Of a stretch of DNA of 64,000 nt, positions 38,738-60,600 are shown piece after piece. Each line of letters starts with the position of its first letter. Position 1 is the stretch's first letter. The position numbers and the translations under genes are program-made. The notes beneath the pieces were generated by a model. That model searched no databases. It saw nothing but the letters and a program-made list of their open reading frames with translations, and was not told the origin of the DNA. The stretch is from NCBI GenBank assembly GCA_965644295.1, contig CBFFRP010000280.1:62001-126000 (forward strand), in the 5' to 3' direction. This stretch comes from Paraphysomonas bandaiensis (taxonomy: Eukaryota; Protista; Chrysophyceae).

Positions 38738-41700
38738 CTATAACAACGGCAGATACGAAAACGACTGCTCAGATGCCAGACCCCACGTCGCGTTCCAATA
38801 TCCTGCTGCTGTAACTGACCCAAAACCACGAAACCAGATGGAACTGCTGAATACTATATAGTCGGGGATGTAATTAGCGAAAGGTGAACGGACCTGAAGA
38901 AGTAGTGTCAGAAGATAATTTGATATTCGCTTTATGTAAGTCACTTACCATTGGAGGAACCACTGGCCATGCTAGTCTGCTTAAATGTAGATACCCATCT
39001 GGTGAATTAGCGTGCAAGCACACTGCTATGTACTCGCCATAATTAGCTGCTGCTATTGGCGCACTGTATACAACTCCGTCTCCGACACCAGCGTACACCA
39101 AATCGCCAACGTAAAACCGAGTATCACCTGCCATAGTCGTGACCCGGACAGGTACTGCACAGCTACTTTCGTCCGAACATACGAGAGCCTTGTATGCTGC
39201 GTTACCATGAACTCCGACAAACATTACACCACATTTTGGACTTCCACTCGATGAACTGTTAATTATACCCAAAAACTGATTGTCACTGTATACATGCACT
39301 GTGGTATGATGGGCCGCAAGGTGGGAGTTGGCGATAAAAGTAGATAGTTCTCGAAGACGGCTGGTGTCCGTAGAAGTTCTAGTACCATTATAGTGGGCAG
39401 CATCGTTAGATGTGGCATATACAACGCACAGCGAATGCGCGTGGATATGACGAACAGGTCCGGTTACAGAAATAGTTTTCTCTAGAAGTGGGTTAGTTTC
39501 TCCTGAACACACTGATACATAGTTGGTTTCTCTACCTCCGGTCCAACACAGTTCCACATGTCTCAACCCAAAGAGATTTATATCCTGTGTCTGAAAGTCT
39601 GATAGACGCACAGATACACTGGTTGCCTGGTGCAATAGAGTACACCGATCTAGACTGAGAGATGCCCTCCTGACATTTCCGTTGGTATACAAGATGCAAG
39701 ATTTATTTTTCCCTGGAGTTCCGCTACAACTTGCCGTGACAACAGACAGTCTCATTGAAATAAACTGTTGCATCACTCTCACACCACAAAGACCGAGCTG
39801 TGATGATGGGTTGATGACCTCTAACTGCATTGGCCGAGTCATGGAGAACGCGCCACATGAGTCACAGCTATGAAGGGTCTCTGCATCGTTTTCACCTCTC
39901 GCTGTCCCCTTCATTCTACAGCGGGAATAGAAGTCACGCATAATATGGTCATTCAACACCCCTCCGTCGTTACTGCTTCTCGTGTCCCACCACCAATGCT
40001 CTTTATCAAGCACTTCTTCATATGTTACTTCTACCCCTTTCTCGTGCAAAATTCTCAGCATTCTTCGACTAAACCACGGATGAGTTACCATATCACGGGC
40101 CCCCACCCTAATATGCACTGCCATGTGTCTCAGATTACTTACTAATCGGTCAACATGATACTCTGACATAGACGCTTCAAGTACTCCTTTAAGAGAGGGG
40201 TCAACAGAACTTGCAGAAACGTCAAGTCCGAAAAAATCGTTAGATGCGCCGTATTCTTCTTTACGAACCCATCCGGAAGTAACGGACAGACATGCCGCAA
40301 AATCTGGCATATTAACAGCAAGTAGCCACGCCCCATGCCCTCCTATGGAACTGTATTATTCTACGAACGTTGCATATGCGCACATAAATACACGCAGGTC
40401 ATATTATCGTTCATTTAATCTCATTTACGCGAACTTACCCATTGAATGTCCAGCAATGATGCCATCGACTAGCCGCAACTGAGGAAGTGCCGAATGCTCT
40501 CGAAAATACCTGGCTATCTGCTCCAGAGCTGTAATGGCAGAGCGTCCTCCTACATCCTCCCAGTTATGCGCACCTGTCCTGCTCGGGGCTAGTACCCAGT
40601 ATCCATCAACTCCAAATATGTAGTCCTGTGATCCAGCAGGAGCATACTTGTAAGCATCCGCCATGCTCAACGGGGAAATACCTGTGCCATGTAGAGAAAG
40701 AATTACAGAGTACATTCCACCACCATTCACAGCAGCGCCAGGAGGGAGTATAACTCCAGCCTCGCTCACCGATCCATCCTGATCTATATATGATAGCAAA
40801 AATGACTGGGTATAATCCCTACAAGAGAAATCCAGAGGTACCCTCACCCGTTGTGAATTTCCATCAGAGATAGATGCAGTTACAACTAAATTGAACTCAA
40901 CACCACGGCTGCAATGTATGTGAAACCCTCTCCACATATCTACGTAATTTCTATACAGAGCTAGAGGTACAGCCACGACCGCACCTTGTTCCAGTATACA
41001 TCTATTATCACGTTGTACACCTGTGTACGAAGCATTGTCAAACACTGTGACTTCATAATCTGTATCCCCAGATGAGGCAGGCAACGACAAAGTCTCAAGA
41101 GTAAACACCACCTCCACCAGCCCACTATGTGTGTTTTGAATGACAACATCAAAGAAAGGAGATAGCACTATACCACGGCTTCGTGAGCTCGGTAAGTTGA
41201 GGGCATGGGAAAGGTGACTAGCAGGTTGTACCTGTATGAGAGTCGACAGTATATCCAATTGACAGGAAAACTGAGCCACACCCGCACCTCGAAGAGGTAG
41301 AGCAATTCCTACCGGACCTGCTGTCAAGCTAACAGTTGCCCGGACTTTGCCGGACCGATACACGTCTCCAGTCAATATCGAGGTGTGACCATTATTTCGT
41401 AAGTATACAGTGTGCACACCAGGACAGTGTACGAAATAAAAGGAAGATATAGATACATACGTCCACACTCTCGCCCAGCCCTGAAACTCAACTGCAGCAA
41501 AGGAGGAGGTTCCGTGGATTAGTTCGTTCCAATTGACGTGAGAATAACGTAAATCAACCATATGGGAAGTTTTAGAGATTTTGAAAGGAGTCCATGTTAC
41601 TTCACCACCTGGAACCAACTCAGAAAACACACGAGCTGTTGGACTCATACTTAGTATATGAACAGCAGGGTCATGTCCGTACATGGCCGACTCCTCCGAG

Positions 41701-42167
41701 GAGCAAAACTGCGACCCGATATCACTGGAGGAGGTCATATTAACAAAAACAGGATCACCATCAACCTCCAGTTTTCCCACTGGTAAAGGTCCGATAACAT
41801 CCCATGTTTTTATTATCAATGGAAGAGTTTGTGGTTTGATTGTATAGAGATCTGTGCTATTAGGATGAACTCTTATAAGAGGAGACGGGCCAGATATAAG
41901 GGACCATATGAGGGCCCTTAGAAGAGATTTCCGTTTATATTTTTGATTTCTGAGTGCTTGACAGGCACATGCATATGCATTATATGTATTCTGATGCCAG
42001 TATGAATGTATAGCAGTGAGTTCATAGTGATCTGCGTGTGTTGGTGTACATACAGGGCACTCACCATATAATACATGAGATACATCGATTGGATTGTTTG
42101 ATGAGATGATTTTACTGTTGAGGGCTATGACAAGTGTCCATATGATGAGAATATGGGGGAGATGCAT
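38738..42167 (-). CDS. Secreted large alpha/beta-hydrolase (S9 peptidase/esterase-like), 3 exons
   Basis: Signal peptide; WDVIGPLPVGKLEVDGDP; SYIDQDGSVSEA, ILSLHGTG, RTGAHNWED; nucleophile elbow GHSMG|GHGAW across an intron; KEHWWWDT; ends ANYIPDY..AAGYWNATW. Confidence 0.8.
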
Positions 42168-43011
42168 GGTGGAGTGGTGTTCGGATATCTAGATATGATT
42201 CATGTATGGATATGCATGTATGTATGTATGCATGTGTGTAGCTAGAGATGAGACTAGGAATTCCATATCTCCTGTATCATATATACTGCCGTATATCCAG
42301 TATACTGTGCTGTATACTGTGTACATATGTATATAGATGTATATGAATGCCTACAATCCACCATACCACCCACAACTTCAAAGTACGCATAGTACTGCAA
42401 CGTCTAGACGTATATACTGTAGTGCATACAGTTGTGCTGAGGGGTCCAAACATGGACGATACTTAAGGGTGCTGATGTGCAAGAGTATGTGACATTAAGA
42501 GTACTAAGAAATGTCACTTTGGGTAAACTATACAGTATATACATCTTGTGTATCAGTACCTTACAGCAGAAGTTATCTCGGTGTAAGAGCGGTACTTATT
42601 ACATGCCACATACAGCAGAGTGGCTTCTATGTAAGCGTTCTGGATTGAGAGTAATGCTCTTAGGGTATAATGCGCAGGTAACCAATACTGGCCAACGGTG
42701 GTGCCCCAGTAGCTATACTTCTAGCTTCTAGCGACTCGCCAGGTAACTTGGATAAACAAGATTAGATGTAGCCTTAAAATATCGAATACGCTTGGGCTCT
42801 ACCGGACTTATGTCCGCAGATACCGACTCATACATACTAAGGACAAGCAGATTTCGTATCGTTAAATAGAAGGATAGTAGAGTTTGCACTAGTTAGTTTA
42901 TGGTAGATGCTTATCTAGCTTGACTAGGCTCCATTTAGTTAACAAGCTGGTTATTATAAATGAATAAGTAGTTATTAATAAATAAAGGCTACTCGTGATT
43001 AACAGTCATTA

Positions 43012-43791
43012 CTACAATTTATTCCAAGTAGGAGTCAAGTTATCAACTGCTCGTGAGTAAGGATAGCCTTCAACACGAACTTTCTTGCGAAGGAAGTCAT
43101 CATTTGTGGTCACATTATCCTTTACTGGATGCCGTCTTATTTTCTTAGTCGGCGGACCACTATTGATAGCCGCTTCGTACTCCTTATTCTTCAGCTCATT
43201 GCGTATATGTAATATATTAGTCACGGCCTTGTCTGCGAAATCGCGGATAGTACGTGTCCACTTATCATATTCTTCAACATTACTTTTGTTAGGTTTCTCC
43301 GGGATTACTATATCTGGTCCAATGAAATGTAGCATTGCATTTACCATTCTTCTGTACATGTTGAATATTTTCTTCTCGTTGTCAGAAAAAGTTGCAGTGT
43401 GTAAGTCCTTCAAATCTGATACATACCAATGGAAAAACACTGAAGCTGAGGATATACCGCTACAGGAATTCAACATCTGTAAACACTGCCCTGGAATAGG
43501 AGTTATTGGCACTTGTTTCATACTTGGTGGATTCCAAGGCGACACAATATGACTTCTTGCTGGAGTAGTAGTGTTTGATGTTTCATCTTGCACAGGGCGT
43601 TTGTGTAGTTCACTTAGTAATAACTCAATGCGGTCAAGTTGATTCTGCATACGATCGAGTCGAATTTCTATACGGTTGGATTGGTCGGACTGAACTTGTT
43701 TAAGTTCAGCAATATCTGAGCTTAGAGCTGTAACAGCATTTCGTGTGTCGGACATGAGTTGATCCAGAGTTGTTACATCTACGATCTCCAT
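43012..43791 (-). CDS. Hypothetical protein with N-terminal coiled coil and a helical C-terminal domain (possibly transposon-derived)
   Basis: ATG at 43791 (MEIVDV) after an apparent 5'UTR GT-AG intron; heptads LSSDIAELKQ..LDRMQNQLDRIELLL; basic PPTKKIRR (NLS-like). Confidence 0.6.
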   Translation of the reverse strand: MEIVDVTTLDQLMSDTRNAVTALSSDIAELKQVQSDQSNRIEIRLDRMQNQLDRIELLLSELHKRPVQDETSNTTTPARSHIVSPWNPPSMKQVPITPIPGQCLQMLNSCSGISSASVFFHWYVSDLKDLHTATFSDNEKKIFNMYRRMVNAMLHFIGPDIVIPEKPNKSNVEEYDKWTRTIRDFADKAVTNILHIRNELKNKEYEAAINSGPPTKKIRRHPVKDNVTTNDDFLRKKVRVEGYPYSRAVDNLTPTWNKL

Positions 43792-44231
43792 TTCACTATA
43801 TATATATTTACAGAACAAACATTAGTAAGGAATCAGACCGACAGGAGGAGGTTATGGTGTGCTATGAGATGCTTTTCTTAAGGGCGGGTTATTGTGTGCT
43901 GTGTTATCATATGTATGGTATGCTATGGGAAATCCTGTAGATAGGTACAACCCTTACAACCCTTACAACCCACTCAGAAATAGCATACCCCTAATTGCAC
44001 TTAGCATCATCATCAGCAGTTAGCAGTTAGCAGTGCTTCTACTATATAGACTATAGTATATATATACACGGAGGGAGTGTGCACAGGTACACATACACAA
44101 CAGTACAGCAGTACACCCTCTGCATATACTGTATATGCATGCATGTCTGTATCTAGTCACAGAGGTGCTAGTAATGAAACCATTTCCACCATGACATGTC
44201 GCTATAGTATCATCATTATAACGCTATCTCA

Positions 44232-45947: not shown

Positions 45948-48900
45948 CTATTCGGGAGAAAGGCCATCGTATGGAGTTAAGCCATACTTGTTCTCAATAG
46001 TATCATCAGCACCATTCTCAAACATCCACTGTGACAGGTCGAAGAATTGGTAAGCTATGCAAAAGTGTGCCGCTGTTTGTCCTTGTAGGTTCTGGTGGTT
46101 CGGGTTGGCACCTTTAGCCATTAAATACTTGGTCACCTTCACATTACCATTTTGGCAGGCAAGGATGAGCATGGTATTGCCATGTTCGTCAGCTTTGTTA
46201 ATGTGGAATGGAAGCTTTTCATAGCCATCAACGTATGCAGTACCGAAGTCTTCAATGTACCCAACCTACAAAAAAAATAAGCTTACAGACACTATACATA
46301 TACGACACGTACCCTGACAAGACTTGGGTCGAAGTCCTTGTTGGGAAGGTAATCCAGCGCCTCTTTGAGCAAATTATATTTAGAGTGGCGTACCAGAGAG
46401 AAGAGCTCCTCCAACGATATCTTCGGTCCGTCAATCATACGCCTATCCTTGCCTCCCGTATCCCCACTATCACTACTTGGTTCCGCAGCTGCTGCAACAG
46501 ACTCACCAAGCTGAGACATATCGGGGAAAAATGGCTCCTCCTCGTCTGGGGCGACAGTCTGCAAATAATGAATCAATACAATTCCTAATAAAATACAACA
46601 AAGTCTACACACAGATATATATAATGCATATCTCACCTGTGGTTGATCTGTTCCCATCTCTCTGAGCATGTGACCGACCCTTGCGTCTCGCTGTGCTTCG
46701 GCTATCTTTAAGCGATGCACGCAGTTAAGAATCTTCTTTCGATGCAATCGGTGCTCCACGCCCAGAGTGTTCTTGAGATCATCATCGTTAAGATCATAGA
46801 GGAACTCTCCATCCACCGCAGCATCAATGAACGCCTCCGAGTACTGTCCAAGGGTCAGTGTCTGTAGCCACCTTGCTACATCCTCGACGCTCCACGAGGA
46901 TACATGCAAGGACTCCTGCCCAGGGAGTTGACCCTGTTTGAGAGAGGGTAAAAACTGAGACCCGCTACCGCCTGCAGGAGGTGCGGCAGAGCCAGATCCA
47001 CCAGCAGTTGCCCCACCAGCTCCTGGGATTGCATTGGCTGCTTTTTGTGCATGGGAATCCGCTAGTGCCGCCATTACCGTGTCCTGCGCCGACACAGTGC
47101 GCATCGCCTTGACCATATTGATAGAACTGAAATAGGTCATGCTCATTGACATGAAGCCGAACTTCATAAGTGTCTCTGTGCTCTGCATCAGCTGAGCAAC
47201 TTGCTGCTTTTCCTTCATAGTTGGTCCTGAAAATCCTCCTCCGCCAGGTACCATTGCTGTACTCTCTCCACCGGCAACACCAGTAGTAGATCCGTCAGTG
47301 ATCTGTAACGGGGCCGATCCAGATGATGCTTTCATCAGCTGGTCATGAGACGCTGCCAATAGGGCCCCGCGGACATCCTGTTTCCTCTTGATAGCTCGCA
47401 GTTCGTTCTGTTGCTCCTCCAGTAATACTACAAGCTTTCGCTCTAGCGTTCTCAATTCCTCTTCTTTCATCTGTCGGGCTTTATCGATGGAGCTCAGCTT
47501 TACCTCTAGGTCTGAAAGCATATCTTTTCGATTGCCTATCTTGCTGAGCATATCGCCAAACTCTCTGTCCAGGCGCATCTTCTGCTCCCTGAGCTCGTAC
47601 TTACTCTCCTCGTCCATATACGACGCCGCCTCTACCTCTACCTTTGAAAGTTGATGCATTTCCTTTTCTAGTATCCTAACTCCTTCTTCGAAACTGGTGA
47701 TCTCTTCCAGCAACGCCTCTACTTGCTCTTCTGCCCCTACTTTTTCCTGAGTCAGCAGAGTCACATCACTCTGCAGTCGGGTAGCATGAAGCTTGTGCTC
47801 GAGCAGCATCTGTCGACCAAATTCGATGCCCTGTGACTGACTCTTACTGAATATGTACTTGTCTCTCTCTGCCGTAGCCTTCCTTCTACCCAGATGGCCT
47901 CGAAACACACGCTGAATGGCTGTGGCGGCATTGCGGCGCTCTCTCCTCTTCCAAGCATCACGTCGCGCCTGATTGCGTCGGAATATCGATTGAATTCGAC
48001 ATACAGCAAGGTATCGTTGGTGGTGCATCTCCTTGACAAACTCACGAGCCACATAACCTCTCCAGTGCCGCTGGATAGTCGCGGCAGCCGCAATCTGGAG
48101 ACGCATATTGTAAAACCACCTTCTACCCAAATATCCCCTCCAAGCGCGCTGGATCATAAGAGTTCCCCATATGCGCCTCGCCTGGTTGAGAAAACTGCAT
48201 CTACCCAGCCACCCTCGGAAACATCTCTGAATAGTCATTGCCGCCTTGCGCCGCCGGATCCCACGTACAAACTGTCGTGCAATATGGGCTCTAAAAGCAC
48301 CTTGAATGACCCTGGCAGCTCCTTGTAAACGTTGTAGCCTCTTCTTGTTCCGTTTAAGCCGCCAGCCCATATACTCTTTTACTTCCGGGTAGTCGGTTAC
48401 CTTTGTCTTAAAGCTGTCCGTGTCGCCCTTGGCCTTCCGTGTCTGACTTTCTTGCTTCTCGAAGTATGAACTAGAGGCATCAAAAGTTACAAAGTTTGTT
48501 TCTGAGGAGTCCAATCCCGCCTTCTTCTTTCCAGTCTTCTTCTTTCCGAGCACTTGTCCCTCTGCAAGATTCACTGCGTAATCTTCCCAGGTCGCATGGG
48601 GATCTTCGGAGGTTGAGTTGGCTGGGAACCTTCGCAGTCTACTAGCAGTGGACGATGCGGTGCTACTCTGGTGCTCAACAGTGCTTACTGTCTTCAAATT
48701 GTCAAGCACTGTATCTATAAATTTATCTTCCACAGACATCTTGTTCAATAACTTCTCCTCCTCACCAGCCTTATTCGATATCAAAACACCACTACTTTCA
48801 CTTTTATCTACTAAAGGAGCGGGAGGGAACGAGATGTCATGCGTCTCGTGGAATCCTGTAAGAATTTGCTCCAAAAGAGTCTGGGTCTGTTTTCGGCACT

Positions 48901-51900
48901 CCTGAAACACCTCATGTCCGGCCTTCATCCATATAACACAGGTTTTCTGGGGGTCGGCAAGAGCTTTAAATATACTCCGTACCTCACCGCCACGATTAGT
49001 GACGTAAGGTTCAGTGTGAAGAGGCCGAGTGAAAGAGTTTTGTGTGCTTTGAATACATATGACAGGGCAATCGATCTCCCGAAGGACAGGACGTACATCC
49101 ACAGAGTGTAACACACCTTTACACAACCCAAGCCTGCCTGTCAGGCTAATGGGATTGTGGACAGCTGTGTAGAGGTTGAGAGCAAGAGGTACTGATACCT
49201 TGGCTAAGTAGTCCTTCGAGAATAAAAACCTCGAATAGAAATAAACCGGTAAATCAGGGCGCGATGGCGGAGCTGCTTGGAAGACATTTATGCAATCGTG
49301 CATAACTCCTGCCAAGTAAGAATCGATGAATGCCCAGCCATTAATATTGATAAGCCCGCGCATATTTGGAATAGAGTAGTGGGAAGCATAAAATGATAAA
49401 ATGCTCGTCCCATGACCAAATCCCATCATATAGAACGGTCGGGTGGTATCAAAATCCTTCGTTCCTTTCTCACCAACCTGACCAATTACCTCATTCAAAC
49501 AGGTGGCGTGATACTCATTATTCAGAAGCTGTTCCGGTCGCCACTCAGTGAATGCTTGACCAGGATAGTTCCATAACAGAATCTGCATACCCAAATACTT
49601 CTGAGCAATAGGCTTGAAAAATATTTTCATCTTCTCAGCGGTATCGAACAAGTCATGACATACAATCAGATTGAAGAAGGGTCTATTGGAGCTCACTTGA
49701 ACTTTGGCCGACTTGGAAAAATCTAAAACCATATATGGCACCCGAGTGTCGGCATCTATCTGCACTGCACCCGACACAGTAGCGTCCGAATCTCCTCCTG
49801 ACCCCCCTGCAACGACCAGTTGTCGGGCCGCAGCAGTTGCGCTATCGGTGCTACCTTCCAGAGTGCCTAGTATGCCCTGTTTATATGACTTAGGGAAGGA
49901 GTCCTTCGGAGCATGCAGCTCGGCTAGACTGGGACCTGTTATCTCCGCGAGGTGATGTGGTACGGCAGCACGAACAGTGTTAATGAGAGAAGTCTTGTTA
50001 GGTGGCATGGATACACAACCGTCCATATCCGCTTTCATATACGCTTGAAGGTCCGCAGGAGTTGTTTGGGAGGTGTAACATATTACAGGCAGTCGTCTGG
50101 TGAACGGCTGTTTGCCTTTGCCAATAGCAGCGGACCTCGCAGCCGCTGCTCTTCGGATTAGCTTTTCCTGCTCTCTCACCTTCGCAACCACCTGGAATGC
50201 GTCGCTCAGGCTAAGATCACGCTGAATGAGTACACAATCGAATTCGGAATCTTTTTTGGTATCCCCTCCGTACAGATCAGTGAGCACTTGAAGGCCATCA
50301 GGAACCCAATGGACATCAAAAAAGGCACTCTCGAGAATAAACTTAGTATCTACAGCCACTTGTCCCTCCGCACATGCCAGCAATATTTTGCCTCTATACA
50401 TATTATCTGCTGAACCTTCGCTTGCGATTAGCTTTGCAGCCTCCTCTGGGTTCTCCTGCTGAAGCTGGTTTATACGCTTCCGAACCAGTTCATCTTTTTC
50501 TTTCTTTCGACGTTCAGCAAGAACATCCGTACCGCCTCGCAAGTAGTCGTCCAGATCCGCAAACTTATCTCTATTGAAAACCTCTTTCTTGATCCCCTTA
50601 TCCCGATAAGACTTCCATGTGCTCTTACGTGCACGCTTCTTGTCCACTGGCTGGGAGGCATTGTCGTCAAATCTCACATCTCCACCATTTCGATTGTCGT
50701 CAGAGTTGGGTCCTACGCGCTCATGTGCTGCCCCTGGCCCAACTGGCACAGTCTTGGACATTTCCGCACTTTGTGCAGAGCCAGGTGCTGATGGAGTACT
50801 TCCATCTCTCCTGGCAGGCAATGCACCCTGGGATTTGCAGTGTCGCATTCCTACAGGAGGCATGCGGTCCCCAGCTGCTCCACTGGACTTCGGCTTAGTA
50901 GTACCCACTACACCCCCCGCTCCAGTGCCTTGCGCATGTGTCTGAAGCACCTCTCTGGCCCAGTCGAGAACCATATATACCTTGCTACATACAGGGCACA
51001 CGCGCACCTTCTCGTAATAAGTTGCCATGTCACGAGTGAAGGTTTCTCGGTGTTGTTTGTCAGAGGCAAGTAAGTCCTGATGATCCTATATAGCACAAAT
51101 TCAGAACAGCCAGTAACATACCCGATAAACTCGTACCTGCTCTGCCTTGAGTTCTCTGTCTACCTGAGCGGACTTTGCCGCAAGATCCCTCTCGGCTTTG
51201 CTAGTAGCACTAGTCACTTCATCAATTTCCGAACGCAGTAGAGCGGCACTGTTTTGCCTCGGAGTAATTGGATATGCACGCCAATCCTCGTTATCCTCTG
51301 TCTCCACAGTAAGTCCGCGGCGCTCTTTACGTGCAAGGATGATACTGCGATTGGCGATTGCAGCTAAAGCGGGACCATTAACGGCACCGAAGTCCATCAT
51401 TTGGCCGAATTTTTTGTTCTTCCGAAGCACATTCAATTCCTTGGATGTGAACATCTTCTCCATGGTATGTTCTTTAGAACTTGGGTCTGTTGTAAGTGAC
51501 CCCACATCTCTGAACGTAACCCTGCAGTAGTCCCCTCTGCACTTGAAGGGGTCAGGAAAACTACTCTGAAGAGGTGCAGAATTCTCAGAGGCTGAATAAA
51601 TATTCCTAGGACTATGCAAGGGAGCTGAAGAGGCGATCTTTTTGCGTTTTACTCCGGCACCAGCAGCAGCATTTTGGGCATCTATGACTGCATTGTCGAG
51701 TGTCATCGCAGCAGTTTGGATTTGAGTCGCGGCCAAGTTTATATCGGCCTTCCTTTCTGTCCCGTCTCTGGGCCAACGTGAAGCTGACCCTACTCGGGAG
51801 GCACTGTGAGACGTCATTGTACCCCCGTCATTTTCTCCACCCTTTTCCAATTCCGCCTCAAAATATTTTGGCCCAGCCCAGCTCATTCGACCTGAGCGGT

Positions 51901-52667
51901 CCCCGGATGGTAAACCCGGGATGTCCGCCACATGGCTTCCGTGAACAATGCGTGCGTCAGACGTCCACATCATCCAAAGCTGGCTCTTAGCATCGATAAC
52001 GTAGTCAACTGTCAGAGAAATTACCTTGACATTGAGCATCATCTCTATGTAACGCGTGACGGTGTTGGTTGCCAAGTCCATGATACTGCATATGTTTGAA
52101 GCCTTACATTCATACTTCTGGCAGGTATCCGAATGCAATACAGTCACTGCCTCAGGGTCAGCAGCATCAATGTCATAAGAATAAGAGTACGTATGTGTCA
52201 CTGAACGCCCCGTTTTATCCTTCAATTCGTACTTGTTTCGAAATATGGTGTGCTTTTTACTTTTGACAAAACAGTGGACAGACATAATAGAGTCATCTGC
52301 AATACTCATTCCATCAGCAAATGTCTGCCACGCATCTTCATTTAAAAATTTTAAAATATTTCCTTTCTGTCGAATGATTCCGATCACTGGAGACTCACTC
52401 TGAGCGGCTATTCGTCGCCATCTCTCAGATAATGCTCTATAGTCGAGGGTACGCTTTTTTAAGATTTCCCCTGTCTTGCCAGTGATGTACCATCTCGCAG
52501 GAGCTGAGCGTTCATATATAACCTGCAATATGACCCATCACACACATCGTTCAGACAGTAAACACACTCACCGTATCTGTGAGACCTAACCGACATTTCT
52601 CTGGAGCATTTCTACTCCATAAGCTGCTAATCACATCATTAGCAGAGAGGGTATCTATCGTCTGCAT
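45948..52667 (-). CDS. ~2,150-aa multidomain protein: ATP-grasp-like N-terminus, Cys motifs, pseudo-receiver, alpha/beta-hydrolase fold, 6 IQ motifs, coiled coil, SAM, ankyrin repeats
   Basis: ORFs 51101-52528, 46292-51028 and 45948-46172 can be joined by GT-AG introns; ATG at 52667 (MQTIDTLSANDV); SAM WSVEDVARWLQTLTLGQYSEAFIDAAVDGEFL; ANK GNTMLILACQNG, GQTAAHFC. Confidence 0.85.
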
Positions 52668-53092: not shown

Positions 53093-53916
53093 ATGGCAAA
53101 GGCAGCACTTATTAGCAAGAAGAGGAAGTTTGTTGCGGATGGCGTGTTCTACGCCGAAATCAACGAGGTGTGATAATGTTATTGATTCTTTGTTTCAGTG
53201 CCATTAATTGTTGTTCTCAAGCTTTTCTCCCGCGAATTGGCCGAGGACGGCTATGCCGGTGTTGAAGTTCGTGTGACTCCTCTCCGCACCGAAATTATCA
53301 TCAAGGCGACCCGTACCCAGGACGTCCTTGGCGAGAAAGGCCAGAGAATCCGTGAATTGACCTCCGTTGTCCAGAAGAGGTACGCAACACAGACTGTATT
53401 ATATGCATGAAATGTAACGTGGGCATCTAGATTTAACTTCAAGGAGGGCGGCGTTGATCTCTTCGCCGAGCGTGTCGCAAACCGTGGTCTCTGCGCTCAG
53501 ACCCAGGCCGAGTCTCTCAAATACAAGCTCCTTGGCAACCTTGCCGTGCGCCGTGCATGCTATGGTGTTCTCCGTTTCATCATGGAATCCGGTGCCAAGG
53601 GTGCTGAGGTCACAGTGTCTGGTAAGCTTCGTGGACAGCGTGCTAAGTCCCAGAAGTTTGCCGATGGTTATATGATCAAGACCGGCCACGCCTTCGAGTG
53701 AGTTATATGATATGTTAGGGGTATATTATCTTATGTATTGTCAATAGGGAGTACGTTGATACTGCAGTCCGCCACGTTCTCATGAGACAGGGTGTTCTCG
53801 GTGTTAAAGTGTCAGTCATGCTTCCCCACGACCCTAAGGGTATTGTTGGCCCCAAGAGCTCTCTGGCTGATGTGATTACCATCCACGAACCCAAGGACGG
53901 CGCTCGCAGCTATTAG
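53093..53916 (+). CDS. RPS3: 40S ribosomal protein S3 (uS3), 4 exons
   Basis: [92 protein letters not shown]. Confidence 0.98.
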
Positions 53917-57619: not shown

Positions 57620-60600
57620 TCAATACATCTCTCCCTCATCATGCTCACAACTCTTTTCGTGTATAATAACCATGGGGGGAGGCATATCCGTAACATTTAG
57701 ACCATCATAGACCAGGTCATCGTCATAGCACTCTTCAATACTATCATGGTGACAGGTCATATCACATGTTTGCTCTTTCAATCTATCAAACACAGGACTT
57801 CCATTGCTTCGGATAGAAGAAAATGACCCATCTATATCCAGTCCAATGGCAGATGACTGCTCTGACCAATCAGTGTTACAACATTCCGACCCACTTTCGT
57901 AGACAATGGCAGGAGGTAACGGTTCTACATTACCATGCTTCTCCATCTGTTCTCCCTTAATTCGAATATATCAAACGTATAATGATTACATTACTAAGTA
58001 CTGTAAAATACTCAGCATTGTACAAATATACCTGTGAATGCCAGTAGGCACGTAACGTCTTATCTGTAATGTCCTTGCGAGTTACCATGCCCACGACATG
58101 GTGATTATTATTGACCACAACCAAGTGACGTAGGCCCAATGTACGAAATTGACTACGACATATCTCATATACTTTACTGAAAATAATGCAGAATGATTTA
58201 CCTGTGGCATCGGGCGACAGTTGTGCTTTCATGTATCATATGTGCCGCAGTGTCCATATACGCTCTCATATCTAGGTACATATTCTGTGCAAAGAGATCA
58301 TTGATATTTACAACAGTATCGCTACGGTTACCATCTCGGACGAAGATAGTGTAATTTCATCAATCTTAGTGTACTGGGGATAGTTCTTCTCCAGTGTTTC
58401 GTAGAACACCGCAGCCGCAGGAGTGAGAAATATACCATCACAGTCATGGTCACACTCTGCGAAGTCTTGAACTGGGTCGTTGAAATTTAAAACAGCGGAG
58501 AAAGCTCTTAGCTCAAGTAATACACAAAGGTACTTACGCAGGATGAGACCTCGAAATCTCCCGTACTTATCAACGGTAGGAAAGCCGTTATGCGAGGTGT
58601 GCTTCAAGACCTCATATACGCGACTCACTCTATCGATTTCACAAAGGGTTATGACAGGTGCCGCCATTATCTCCGTTACGGGGTTATAATTCAGGAGACC
58701 TAGGGTATGTAGTGCACTCTCAAGGAATGGAAAATCCTTTACCTTCAGCGTAATGTCGTAGATTCCGTCATTGATAGCTTTTCCTGTGTATCTTGCTGCT
58801 GCAAATGTGACCATTAAAGGAAGAAGATATGTCATGTTTCCCGCGGTTTCAAGCATGATAATAGTCATGGCCAGAGTAATCCGAGTAACTCCACCATTTA
58901 TAGCGGCCGCACCCATTAGTGAATAGGTGCCGGAGTTCGCAATCCGACCGGGAAGGAGAGAATTCAGTGCATGCCCCCATATTCGCCCATAAGCAGCACC
59001 TGCTACTAGGGAAGGTACGAAAAGCCCCATCGGAATGGTGAGGCCACCGGTCAGCATCGCCATAGGAAAGTATGACAGAAAGAATAATATCAGAGGACCG
59101 GCGGTGAATGACGGAAAGGTGCTGTGCTCATATTCTCTGAAATGAAAGAGGTTCTTCATACACTGGTTGGAAGTGACAAAGTACAGTGATGCAAGCTCGT
59201 TGTAGTGATCTGAATCGCATTGGAACGACACTAAATTATCCAGCATCTCCATTTCATCGTCTGTCCAGTTAGCCGTTTCGTCAGCTGTAGGAAGACGGGA
59301 GCACTTTTGCCATACTAGTGGAAGCAAAAAACTGATACAAGCCATACCTGCAGTGAACATAAGGAGCCGTATAAACTTCAATGATGGAGTGGACATATGA
59401 GATCCATAGTAATTTGCGACCCGGGTGTGAATTACGTTAAATACAGCACCTATTACACCTCCTGTAGCACCCATAAGCATAAATATAAATATTTCATAAG
59501 AACGAAAATTCGTCTTCCCGTCGTAGAGATCGTTGAACTTGCCAAAAACAAACATGTCTGACGTCCGCTGGAAACCGAACCCATGAGAATCGAAGAGAAA
59601 GCTCACCGTCATCATTGTAACCGTGGCACATACGAATGTGCGAAAAGTTAGAGAAGTCGACCAAAAGGATGCACCCTCCTCAAGAGCAAAGAGCACACCA
59701 CCTTGGCAACTATAATATTAGACTATAGTGTAGTTGACAACATATAAACACATACAGGCTTACAAAAGACTAATGTTTGCTTGTAGTAAAGACAAATGGA
59801 TGCTCATATATTTTACTCAACGAAACTTTCATAGTACTGAATACTCGTCACACTATAAGAATCGGTACGTATTATATTACCTATTGGAGCTCTAAACCCA
59901 GCAGCCACCCCTGCAGCCGCCCCGTAGGTAACAAAATCTCTTTTCGTATAGTCATTACGAAACTCCTGAATTTGGGTCCATGAGACGTCCATACCGAATA
60001 TTTTACCCCTTCCTTGTGATATGAGAGCACCAAGAGTAGAACCTATCTGGATCAAAGGCCCTTTCTTTCCTATTGGAAGTCCGGCACCAACAGCAAAGCA
60101 CAGACCAAGAGTTTTAGCTACAAGAAGGCGAATATCTTCAAATTCATTGAGATTAATGCCATTCAAGAATGCCTTGATCTCAGGGATACCTCCGCCTAAA
60201 ATATAGTGTCACTTAGCATACTAGCAATACAGATGTTACCTGTGGCAAGAGGCTGCAAGTAACAGAACGCCCCTGCTATTGACCCGAAGAACAGACTCAT
60301 AAATTGATAGGAAAAAAAAGCCGCTGCCCATTTACCCTCCTTTATGTTTGCTATAGCTGGCAAATATATAATATACCCATCATAAAAGTATACCATATAT
60401 ATTTATTCTATCACCAGTAGAAAACTTCCACTCTAATAGCGAGCCAGTCAACGTGGAGATGAAGCATCCAACACAGCCAACAGCTATTGCAACAACAATG
60501 CAAAGTATCCACTTCCGGAGTGTTACCAAACGTGACTTGGTCCAAAAACTGCCACGATCTTGAAAGAATCTTCTTGTCTCGTGCTGTTATTAGACATTCA

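Follow-up and report, generated by a model that had tools for sequence, protein, structure and literature searches.

A 64,000-nucleotide (nt) stretch of the chrysophyte Paraphysomonas bandaiensis genome (contig CBFFRP010000280.1, positions 62,001 to 126,000; hereafter the window) was found to carry, on its minus strand, one spliced and expressed gene, transcribed as a single mRNA, for a non-enzymatic scaffold protein of 2,164 amino acids (aa). From the N- to the C-terminus, the protein is predicted to contain a DC4-like domain accompanied by split Cys motifs, a receiver domain, an alpha/beta-hydrolase domain, six IQ motifs, a helical segment, a SAM domain and ankyrin repeats. It belongs to an old, stramenopile-wide family with constant domain order, which is already present in the databases and for which no study was found. 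Its best reading is that of a Ca2+/calmodulin-regulated scaffold on microtubules, axonemal or other, which we hold with moderate confidence; as for location, the flagellum is the best single guess, with the balance standing about even.

The coding sequence runs from an ATG at 52667 to a TAG at 45948-45950, the ends given in the first-pass annotation, and comprises 6,495 nt without internal stop in five exons, all of phase 0, separated by four introns with GT..AG ends (Table 1). In the mechanical list of open reading frames (ORFs), three long minus-strand ORFs with short gaps between them fill the locus. Because intron 3 keeps the frame and contains no stop, this list gives one 1,578-aa ORF across it; retention of the intron (46559-46636) would insert 26 aa and leave the reading frame intact.

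Transcription and splicing were checked by mapping contigs of public sequencing runs onto positions 46200-52199, with intron 1 lying outside that stretch. In run X1, a single contig of 6,666 nt extends over the whole of it and lacks precisely introns 4, 3 and 2 (47, 78 and 51 nt), the skipped ends being CT..AC on the plus strand, that is, GT..AG on the gene strand. By its length and offsets, this contig reaches ~110 nt beyond both the stop and the ATG, consistent with one mRNA. All three skips were also seen in run X4, which comes from another study and bears another organism label, and the 47- and 78-nt skips were seen in run X5, a polyA marine metatranscriptome, while the DNA-like run X18 showed zero skips and kept the introns. 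For intron 1, the BLAST alignments of homologues start at residue 4 and continue across the junction of exons 1 and 2. The earlier proposal of one spliced gene at 45948-52667 is borne out by these contigs, those of X1 and X4 removing introns 2-4.

The locus could instead be divided into two adjacent genes, one for an N-terminal 494-aa protein and the other for a 1,650-aa protein starting from an ATG at 51028. This division is suggested by the unspliced frame of exon 2, which ends at 51101 with that ATG 70 nt downstream, and by the many database entries that are N-terminal fragments of 450-550 aa. However, the RNA contigs of two studies excise exactly 51 nt and join the two frames in phase, collinearity over the intron 2 junction holds in homologues of 1,900-2,460 aa belonging to five stramenopile classes, and the paired Cys motifs sit on either side of this intron. 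Moreover, short entries are expected from prokaryote-style gene calling on intron-containing contigs. We thus regard two genes as extremely improbable.

The contigs also differ slightly from the window. At nine positions in the 6 kb mapped, all within 48365-51776, runs X1, X4 and X18 agree on a letter other than that of the window, with X5 covering and sharing three of them. Of these coding differences, seven are synonymous and two affect linkers, at aa 312 and aa 516; the nine shared differences indicate that the window represents a slightly different strain or haplotype from X1, X4 and X18.

With the receiver-hydrolase core as query, 248 proteins were found, the best 120 of which all match at <= 1e-108, and the Pfam set IQ, SAM, Ank and Response_reg is present in most of these best 120 of 248 homologues. 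The distribution statements made here and below derive from the named proteins among the matches listed (the best 120), not from genome searches. Members were found in chrysophytes (Spumella, Ochromonas and Ochromonadaceae sp.), in brown algae and their allies (Ectocarpus CBN77180, named 'Response receiver', Scytosiphon, Nemacystus and Chrysoparadoxa), in pelagophytes (Chrysophaeum and Aureococcus), in a bolidophyte (Triparma), a labyrinthulid (Hondaea) and a bicosoecid (Cafeteria), and in oomycetes (Saprolegnia, Aphanomyces, Achlya, Pythium, Globisporangium and many Phytophthora, including P. infestans PITG_17963). The closest relatives share 83% identity with the window protein, and the closest named chrysophytes ~62-65%. 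The first 520 residues are collinear and N-terminal in 75 of the best 120 homologues, including those of Ectocarpus, Triparma, Cafeteria and Achlya. No diatom name appeared among the 120 matches listed, even when the query came from Triparma, the sister group of diatoms. All named homologues come from lineages having flagellate stages. For Aureococcus, a full flagellar dynein set is retained and a flagellate stage is not known (PMC4736243).

The architecture is thus not unique to this organism. As the first-pass annotation had supposed, no characterised protein with such an architecture came to light: the literature search found no paper joining this set of domain names, no characterised orthologue, and no paper mentioning CBN77180/D8LLW6, A0A5A8CAL2, A0A2R5GAI9, A0A1V9YRD8, PITG_17963, SPRG_03104, SDRG_03054 or PPTG_17651. 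The automatic database names of the family include 'Response receiver', 'SAM domain-containing protein', 'Unconventional myosin-Va' and 'Calmodulin'. Every part is of a known kind and the family is deposited though unstudied. Some database models carry extra domains, namely a START domain in P0283 (Nemacystus decipiens, 3,245 aa) and importin-type domains in P0297 (Aphanomyces astaci, 2,989 aa), which may be true fusions or merged adjacent genes. When the profile of the N-terminal domain was compared with a representative library, it matched 1,053 clusters, the lengths of which are unreliable, many entries being exon-sized fragments.

The N-terminal domain had been described as unknown in the first-pass annotation, a description that no longer applies. 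A profile built from 28 relatives matches the Leishmania tarentolae 'distal DC4 / ODA dDC4' (9e78, 9y6s) at 2.8e-10 and T. brucei TbDC65 (9e5c) at 4.2e-8, and the same DC4 chains occupy Foldseek ranks 1-3 for the AlphaFold (AF2) model of the domain (pLDDT 85.7), with TMq of 0.66, 0.65 and 0.55. Tubulin tyrosine ligase (TTL) and other ATP-grasp enzymes rank below DC4, TTL weakly so (TMq 0.41), and Pfam ATPgrasp_YheCD matches 18 of the 28 members, with a best E-value of 3.4e-05 at a reporting threshold of 1.0. On the combined strength of profile and model, the domain is assigned to the ATP-grasp-like fold of the DC4 family. Its Atlas neighbours are clusters without names, among which ciliates are the commonest. 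In the family alignment, which is not a residue-level structural comparison, an Asp/Glu column and two Trp are kept and no conservation is seen at the expected place of E-x-N; this ATP-grasp-like head is probably the third pseudo-enzyme of the protein. Pfam run on the domain itself returned only a sub-threshold EndoU/NSP15 match (23.3 bits against a cut-off of 23.9), and this identity was rejected as spurious because fold and profile evidence points to ATP-grasp/DC4.

In trypanosomatids, DC4 is a subunit of the complex that docks the outer dynein arm, where it has a defined place: it is seated on the coiled coil of DC1/DC2 and touches the outer-arm alpha heavy chain, its loss leads to slower swimming, and orthologues occur in other flagellates (PMC7617938, PMC11971395). 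By sequence comparison, the window domain is a paralogue rather than an orthologue of DC4, because a gene on contig C125 of the same genome reaches dDC4 at 4.5e-29 as a single sequence, while the window domain as a single sequence found no match in the PDB. Downstream of the DC4-like domain lie two Cys motifs separated by intron 2, both of them conserved widely. The first, C-x-G-D-[YF]-C, occurs in 53 of the 120 homologues listed and also in the paralogue on contig C335 described below, and JGI labels homologues as 'Zn-ribbon protein'. The pair is a putative split zinc ribbon, with metal binding suggested by the motif.

The genome of the window contains at least three further DC4-like genes, as revealed by a profile search of its contigs. 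The gene on contig C125 (L006:3606-6653, minus strand) is a 1,015-aa ORF whose first ~250 residues match, in addition to dDC4, TbDC65 at 2.7e-25; on this similarity it is identified as the genome's close orthologue of trypanosomatid DC4, and its long Ser/Pro/Lys-rich tail gave no Pfam match. A 431-aa DC4-like paralogue is found on contig C232 (L002:1444-2739, plus strand), with no Pfam or PDB matches of its own. Compared by hhalign with the N-domain profile of the window protein, the C125 and C232 genes gave probabilities of 98-99% (99% for C232).

The third of these loci is a second giant paralogue, predicted from sequence matches on contig C335 (~63509-70467, minus strand; L004, L005, L007 and L009). 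There, DC4-like exons are followed by paired Cys motifs, a dynein stalk with its microtubule-binding domain, a G-x-G-x-G hydrolase and IQ motifs. The microtubule-binding domain matches Pfam MT at 1e-17 and axonemal heavy chains at 8.5e-18, the hydrolase matches our hydrolase profile at 2.1e-58 and the window copy at 29% identity (2e-55), and the IQ motifs match at 2e-19. The C335 and window genes together indicate that the trio of DC4-like head, dead hydrolase and IQ array is a recurring module, which in the predicted C335 locus appears to be joined to an axonemal-type microtubule-binding device. For a dynein microtubule-binding domain to occur elsewhere than in a dynein heavy chain is unusual by itself. 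On contig C255 (L010:2259-9143, minus strand), a single 2,294-aa ORF has no Pfam match at E <= 0.01 and matches the dead-hydrolase profile weakly (4.1e-13); it is possibly a third hydrolase relative, at a greater distance.

The receiver domain is degenerate. The window copy scores 23.6 bits against PF00072, for which the gathering cut-off is 30.2, and all 33 aligned relatives match this family at E <= 0.01 (best 9.6e-20). With positions placed by the canonical motif pattern, not by structure, the phospho-acceptor Asp57 column holds Gln in the window copy and Q10, A7, S6, D5, E4 and G1 across the 33 family members; in the window copy, Cys-Ala stands in place of the acidic pair that follows strand 1. 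Of the 33 relatives, 31 have Thr87 and all have Pro110, and the Lys109 position is Met in the window copy and K17 and R5 across the family (Lys or Arg in 22/33).

Conservation within the protein peaks in the hydrolase, with a mean column identity of 56% and 48 invariant columns. Pfam did not call an alpha/beta-hydrolase in the window copy, and Abhydrolase_1 matches 14 of 33 relatives. The AlphaFold model (pLDDT 87.5) has the canonical fold: Foldseek aligned it with MGS-M2 and an enol-lactonase at E ~1e-15, and VIA with esterases at Z 30.9 and a root-mean-square deviation (rmsd) of 2.1 Å over 260 residues, D14 and RsbQ following at Z ~25.6. The nucleophile elbow reads G-x-G-x-G, with Gly at the nucleophile position in 32/32 relatives and also in the C335 paralogue; the His is kept in 32/32, and the acid is Asn in the window copy, as against D19, N11 and G2 in the family. 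An NDRG-like pseudo-hydrolase (PF03096) was considered on the likeness of the motif and rejected: neither the window copy nor its relatives gave a Pfam Ndr match, and no NDRG chain appeared in the PDB profile search or in the Foldseek and VIA top 50. Judged by these residues, the receiver and the hydrolase are both non-catalytic pseudo-enzymes. The earlier statement that the enzyme-like modules lack catalytic residues is therefore upheld by the Gly nucleophile in 32/32 and by the Gln acceptor and Met at Lys109 in the receiver.

The first-pass annotation had gone further and proposed a ligand-sensing scaffold in which small-molecule binding is coupled to calmodulin/Ca2+ and SAM polymerisation. 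On this reading, the hydrolase pocket and/or the receiver would sense a small molecule or a phosphoryl signal, in the manner of the receptor hydrolases D14/KAI2 and RsbQ, and relay it to calmodulin binding and SAM polymerisation. The strong conservation of the hydrolase, with its invariant His and with Asp in 19/32, suggests a constrained pocket, and D14 and RsbQ are among its structural neighbours; in the receiver, Thr87 and Lys/Arg at position 109 are widely kept among the relatives. However, D14 and RsbQ retain their nucleophile, whereas Gly has taken its place throughout this family, and the nearer structural neighbours are ordinary esterases. The receiver, for its part, has the acceptor Asp in just 5/33 relatives, with Gln and Met at the two key positions here. 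A ligand-sensing role, which would be compatible with either a flagellar or a cytoplasmic location, thus seems unlikely to us.

The C-terminal half of the protein consists of recognisable interaction modules. Six matches to [ILV]Q-x3-[RK]-x4-[RK] start at aa 1421, 1446, 1472, 1498, 1525 and 1551, and by their match to the PF00612 consensus they are predicted to bind calmodulin or light chains. The array lies in a stretch of 358 residues without proline (aa 1395-1752), which continues into a helix rich in E, L, K and R. The best PDB match of the IQ array and coiled coil is the neck and proximal coiled coil of myosin-5A (2dfs, residues 780-1067; 4.1e-11), and weaker matches are to axonemal FAP305 and SPATA17 (1.4e-4). 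Only the neck and coiled coil of a class V myosin are matched, and no myosin head was found by Pfam. A heptad scan for the coiled coil was unspecific along the entire protein and was not used. When two copies of aa 1565-1745 were modelled together, ipSAE was 0.64 against 0.00 for the best control, with a partner pLDDT of at least 71 and contact agreement between runs of at least 0%; the model thus passed the controls, the mark for self-pairing being one reached by 21/30 proteins solved as one-chain pairs and by 0/23 solved as single chains (17/29 against 0/30 in eukaryotes). Self-association of the helical segment is supported by this model; its geometry is not.

The SAM domain scores well above the Pfam cut-offs of 23 (SAM_1, PF00536) and 20.5 (SAM_2, PF07647), and its nearest PDB relatives are those of liprin-beta1, SARM1/TIR-1, Shank and caskin (1.8e-15 to 1e-8). 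Head-to-tail polymerisation is predicted by similarity to the oligomerising SAM domains of SARM1, Shank and caskin. The protein ends with ankyrin repeats (Ank_4 48.4, Ank_2 44 and Ank 39.5 bits). The domain list of the first-pass annotation was correct: all six of its IQ strings are present, SAM and Ank are called by Pfam, the receiver is recognised via relatives and the hydrolase via its AF2 fold, and the coiled coil lies in the proline-free stretch.

As to how such a protein may work, we propose that the DC4-like head holds it to microtubules at a coiled-coil site or one associated with dynein, the flagellar axoneme being the likeliest place. The IQ helix, free of proline, would bear calmodulin or similar light chains, six at most, like a myosin-V neck, and with such loading Ca2+ would alter the stiffness or occupancy of the arm. 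Dimers or multimers would form through the helical segment and the SAM domain, and the hydrolase, dead yet very strongly conserved, could offer, along with the dead receiver and the ankyrin repeats, a binding surface for partners, possibly for a ligand. Through all these parts together, an assembly bound to microtubules and tuning the behaviour of the flagellum would be linked to Ca2+ signals.

In the main alternative, the same parts are read as a cytoplasmic, non-flagellar scaffold, namely a motor-less, myosin-V-like adaptor for cortical or cytoplasmic microtubules, vesicles or signalling complexes, in which the DC4-like head would be merely a general coiled-coil or tubulin-binding module and SAM and ankyrin would serve as cargo or partner domains. 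The neck and coiled coil are indeed most like myosin-5A, the nearest SAM relatives (liprin, Shank, caskin and SARM1) are cytoplasmic, and the at least four DC4-like genes in the genome, together with paralogy, indicate that the domain has diversified. Against this stand the facts that the only characterised relatives of the head are axonemal, that the microtubule-binding domain of C335 is nearest to axonemal heavy chains, that the look-alike clusters of the head are ciliate-rich, and that among the matches listed the family occurs only in lineages with flagellate stages. A cytoplasmic scaffold is therefore possible and, in our judgement, somewhat improbable. The earlier suggestion of a place at the flagellum or cytoskeleton gains indirect support from the head, the C335 dynein domain and the flagellate-lineage distribution.

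Several observations weigh against the flagellar, microtubule-scaffold reading. The C125 gene is far nearer to DC4 than the window N-domain is, and given this paralogy the binding partners of DC4 are not simply transferable to the window protein. The contacts in the self-pairing model resemble an antiparallel hairpin bundle, not a parallel coil, and one of three runs failed. For the family, the search yielded no data on localisation, proteomics or expression by stage. In the accessible parts of a 257-gene oomycete flagellar list and of RNA-seq supplements (PMC3471859, PMC5322657), PITG_17963 did not appear, which also fits a cytoplasmic scaffold; as known flagellar proteins were the seeds of the list and the supplements are possibly incomplete, this absence is uninformative. 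Centric diatoms have kept outer dynein arms and lost inner-arm and intraflagellar transport (IFT) dyneins (PMC5100056), yet no diatom homologue is among the matches listed, which argues against an obligatory outer-arm role and likewise favours the cytoplasmic alternative. If the protein is flagellar, the apparent absence from diatoms hints at a link with the lost inner-arm/IFT structures.

A more specific version of the flagellar reading can be offered tentatively, as one that we hold possible and less than probable. It takes the protein as a stramenopile-specific axonemal Ca2+/calmodulin hub, whose DC4-like head would dock by the dynein arms and whose IQ arm with six light chains and SAM multimers would set waveform or steering. 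Together with the C335 paralogue, it would represent a new class of motor-less, 'dynein-mimicking' axonemal scaffolds built around a dead hydrolase, which may have been lost in diatoms alongside inner arms, spokes or the central pair.

The molecular steering of stramenopile flagella, a hairy anterior and a smooth posterior one in brown-algal gametes, oomycete zoospores and chrysophytes, is poorly understood. In the present family, a dynein-docking-type domain is combined with a six-IQ calmodulin arm and retained group-wide for more than a billion years, which makes it a concrete and testable candidate for a lineage-specific regulator. The retention of three enzyme folds (ATP-grasp, receiver and hydrolase) as non-catalytic parts of one chain is a striking case. 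Furthermore, orthologues are present in crop and fish pathogens (Phytophthora, Saprolegnia and Aphanomyces), for which zoospore swimming is important for infection, and these orthologues make ordinary loss-of-function tests feasible.

Table 1. Features of the scaffold gene, in positions of the window
Feature	Position	Strand	Basis
Whole coding gene, ATG to TAG; 5 exons, 2,164 aa	45948..52667	-	Frame tests and RNA contig with three introns removed
Exon 1 (aa 1-32)	52572..52667	-	Junction backed by homologue alignments starting at residue 4
Intron 1, 49 nt, GT..AG	52523..52571	-	Sequence and frame; support from homology only
Exon 2 (aa 33-494)	51137..52522	-	Frame and RNA contigs
Intron 2, 51 nt, between N-terminal module and remainder	51086..51136	-	51-nt skip in X1 and X4; retained in DNA run X18
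Exon 3 (aa 495-1977)	46637..51085	-	Frame and RNA contigs
Intron 3, 78 nt, in frame, stop-free	46559..46636	-	78-nt skip in X1, X4 and X5
Exon 4 (aa 1978-2059)	46313..46558	-	Frame and RNA contigs
Intron 4, 47 nt	46266..46312	-	47-nt skip in X1, X4 and X5
Exon 5 (aa 2060-2164 plus stop)	45948..46265	-	Frame and RNA contigs
DC4-like ATP-grasp-fold domain, predicted (aa ~12-235)	51914..52634 (span includes intron 1)	-	Profile and AF2/Foldseek
Cys motif C-x-G-D-Y-C (aa 360-365), putative zinc ribbon half 1 (split)	51524..51541	-	Motif
C-P-V-C motif (aa 524-527), putative zinc ribbon half 2, other side of intron 2	50987..50998	-	Motif
Degenerate receiver (REC-like) domain (aa ~722-876)	49940..50404	-	PF00072 in relatives
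Alpha/beta-hydrolase-fold domain, G-x-G-x-G (aa ~929-1245)	48833..49783	-	AF2, Foldseek, VIA and column counts
Six IQ motifs, spacing 25-27 residues (aa 1421-1561)	47885..48307	-	Pfam IQ 8.4e-17
Coiled-coil or helical self-association segment, predicted (aa ~1575-1740)	47348..47845	-	Composition, myosin-5A match and self-pairing model
SAM domain (aa 1891-1954)	46706..46897	-	SAM_1 60.7 bits (1.7e-16), SAM_2 58.2 bits
Ankyrin repeats (aa ~2022-2155)	45978..46426 (span includes intron 4)	-	Ank_4 1e-12, Ank_2 3.4e-11, Ank 5e-10

Around the gene, the window holds an ORF with a voltage-gated chloride channel (CLC) domain (58308-59696, minus strand; Pfam 5e-36), an unrelated neighbour. Upstream of the gene start, short plus-strand ORFs at 53198-53690 are, by eye, candidate exons of a gene of the ribosomal protein S3 type, with a KH domain. 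Downstream, at 38874-43818 on the minus strand, ORFs of 478, 580 and 268 aa gave no Pfam match at E <= 0.001.

Compared with known systems, the head of the window protein is closest to DC4 (dDC4/pDC4 and TbDC65), with which it shares the fold and detectable sequence homology, including the 'PDTV..' start and the 'D..D...W..W' strand; unlike the window protein, DC4 is 490-570 aa long and has no receiver, hydrolase, IQ, SAM or ankyrin parts. The receiver resembles those of pseudo-response regulators in its fold signature with Thr87 and Pro110 and in the replacement of the acceptor Asp, but it is placed inside a giant cytoskeletal-type protein, without a histidine kinase or the usual output domain. 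The hydrolase shares the full fold with esterases, haloperoxidases and enol-lactonases (5h3h, 8qzu, 4q3l, 2xua), D14 and RsbQ (Z 25-31, rmsd 2.1-2.9 Å, ~260 residues), and across the family the His and usually the Asp are in place; different from these enzymes, the Ser nucleophile is replaced by Gly in all family members, the acid is Asn in the window copy, and the domain is embedded in a 2,164-aa scaffold.

The arm and the C-terminus have counterparts of other kinds. Six IQ motifs at ~25-residue spacing followed by a coiled-coil-type helix are found in the myosin-V neck and tail (2dfs, 7yv9) as in the window protein, which however has neither a motor nor a globular tail and whose self-association model looks antiparallel, unlike a two-stranded parallel coil. 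Tandem IQ motifs are also shared, with a weak match, by FAP305 of the Chlamydomonas central apparatus (7n6g) and SPATA17 of sperm doublets (9ijj), small proteins without the other window domains; the likeness possibly reflects just the IQ motifs. Finally, the SAM domain is of the type found in SAM and ankyrin scaffolds (Shank, caskin, the ANKS family, liprins and SARM1) and lies beside ankyrin repeats; different from these scaffolds, SAM precedes ankyrin here, and the two close a far larger protein.

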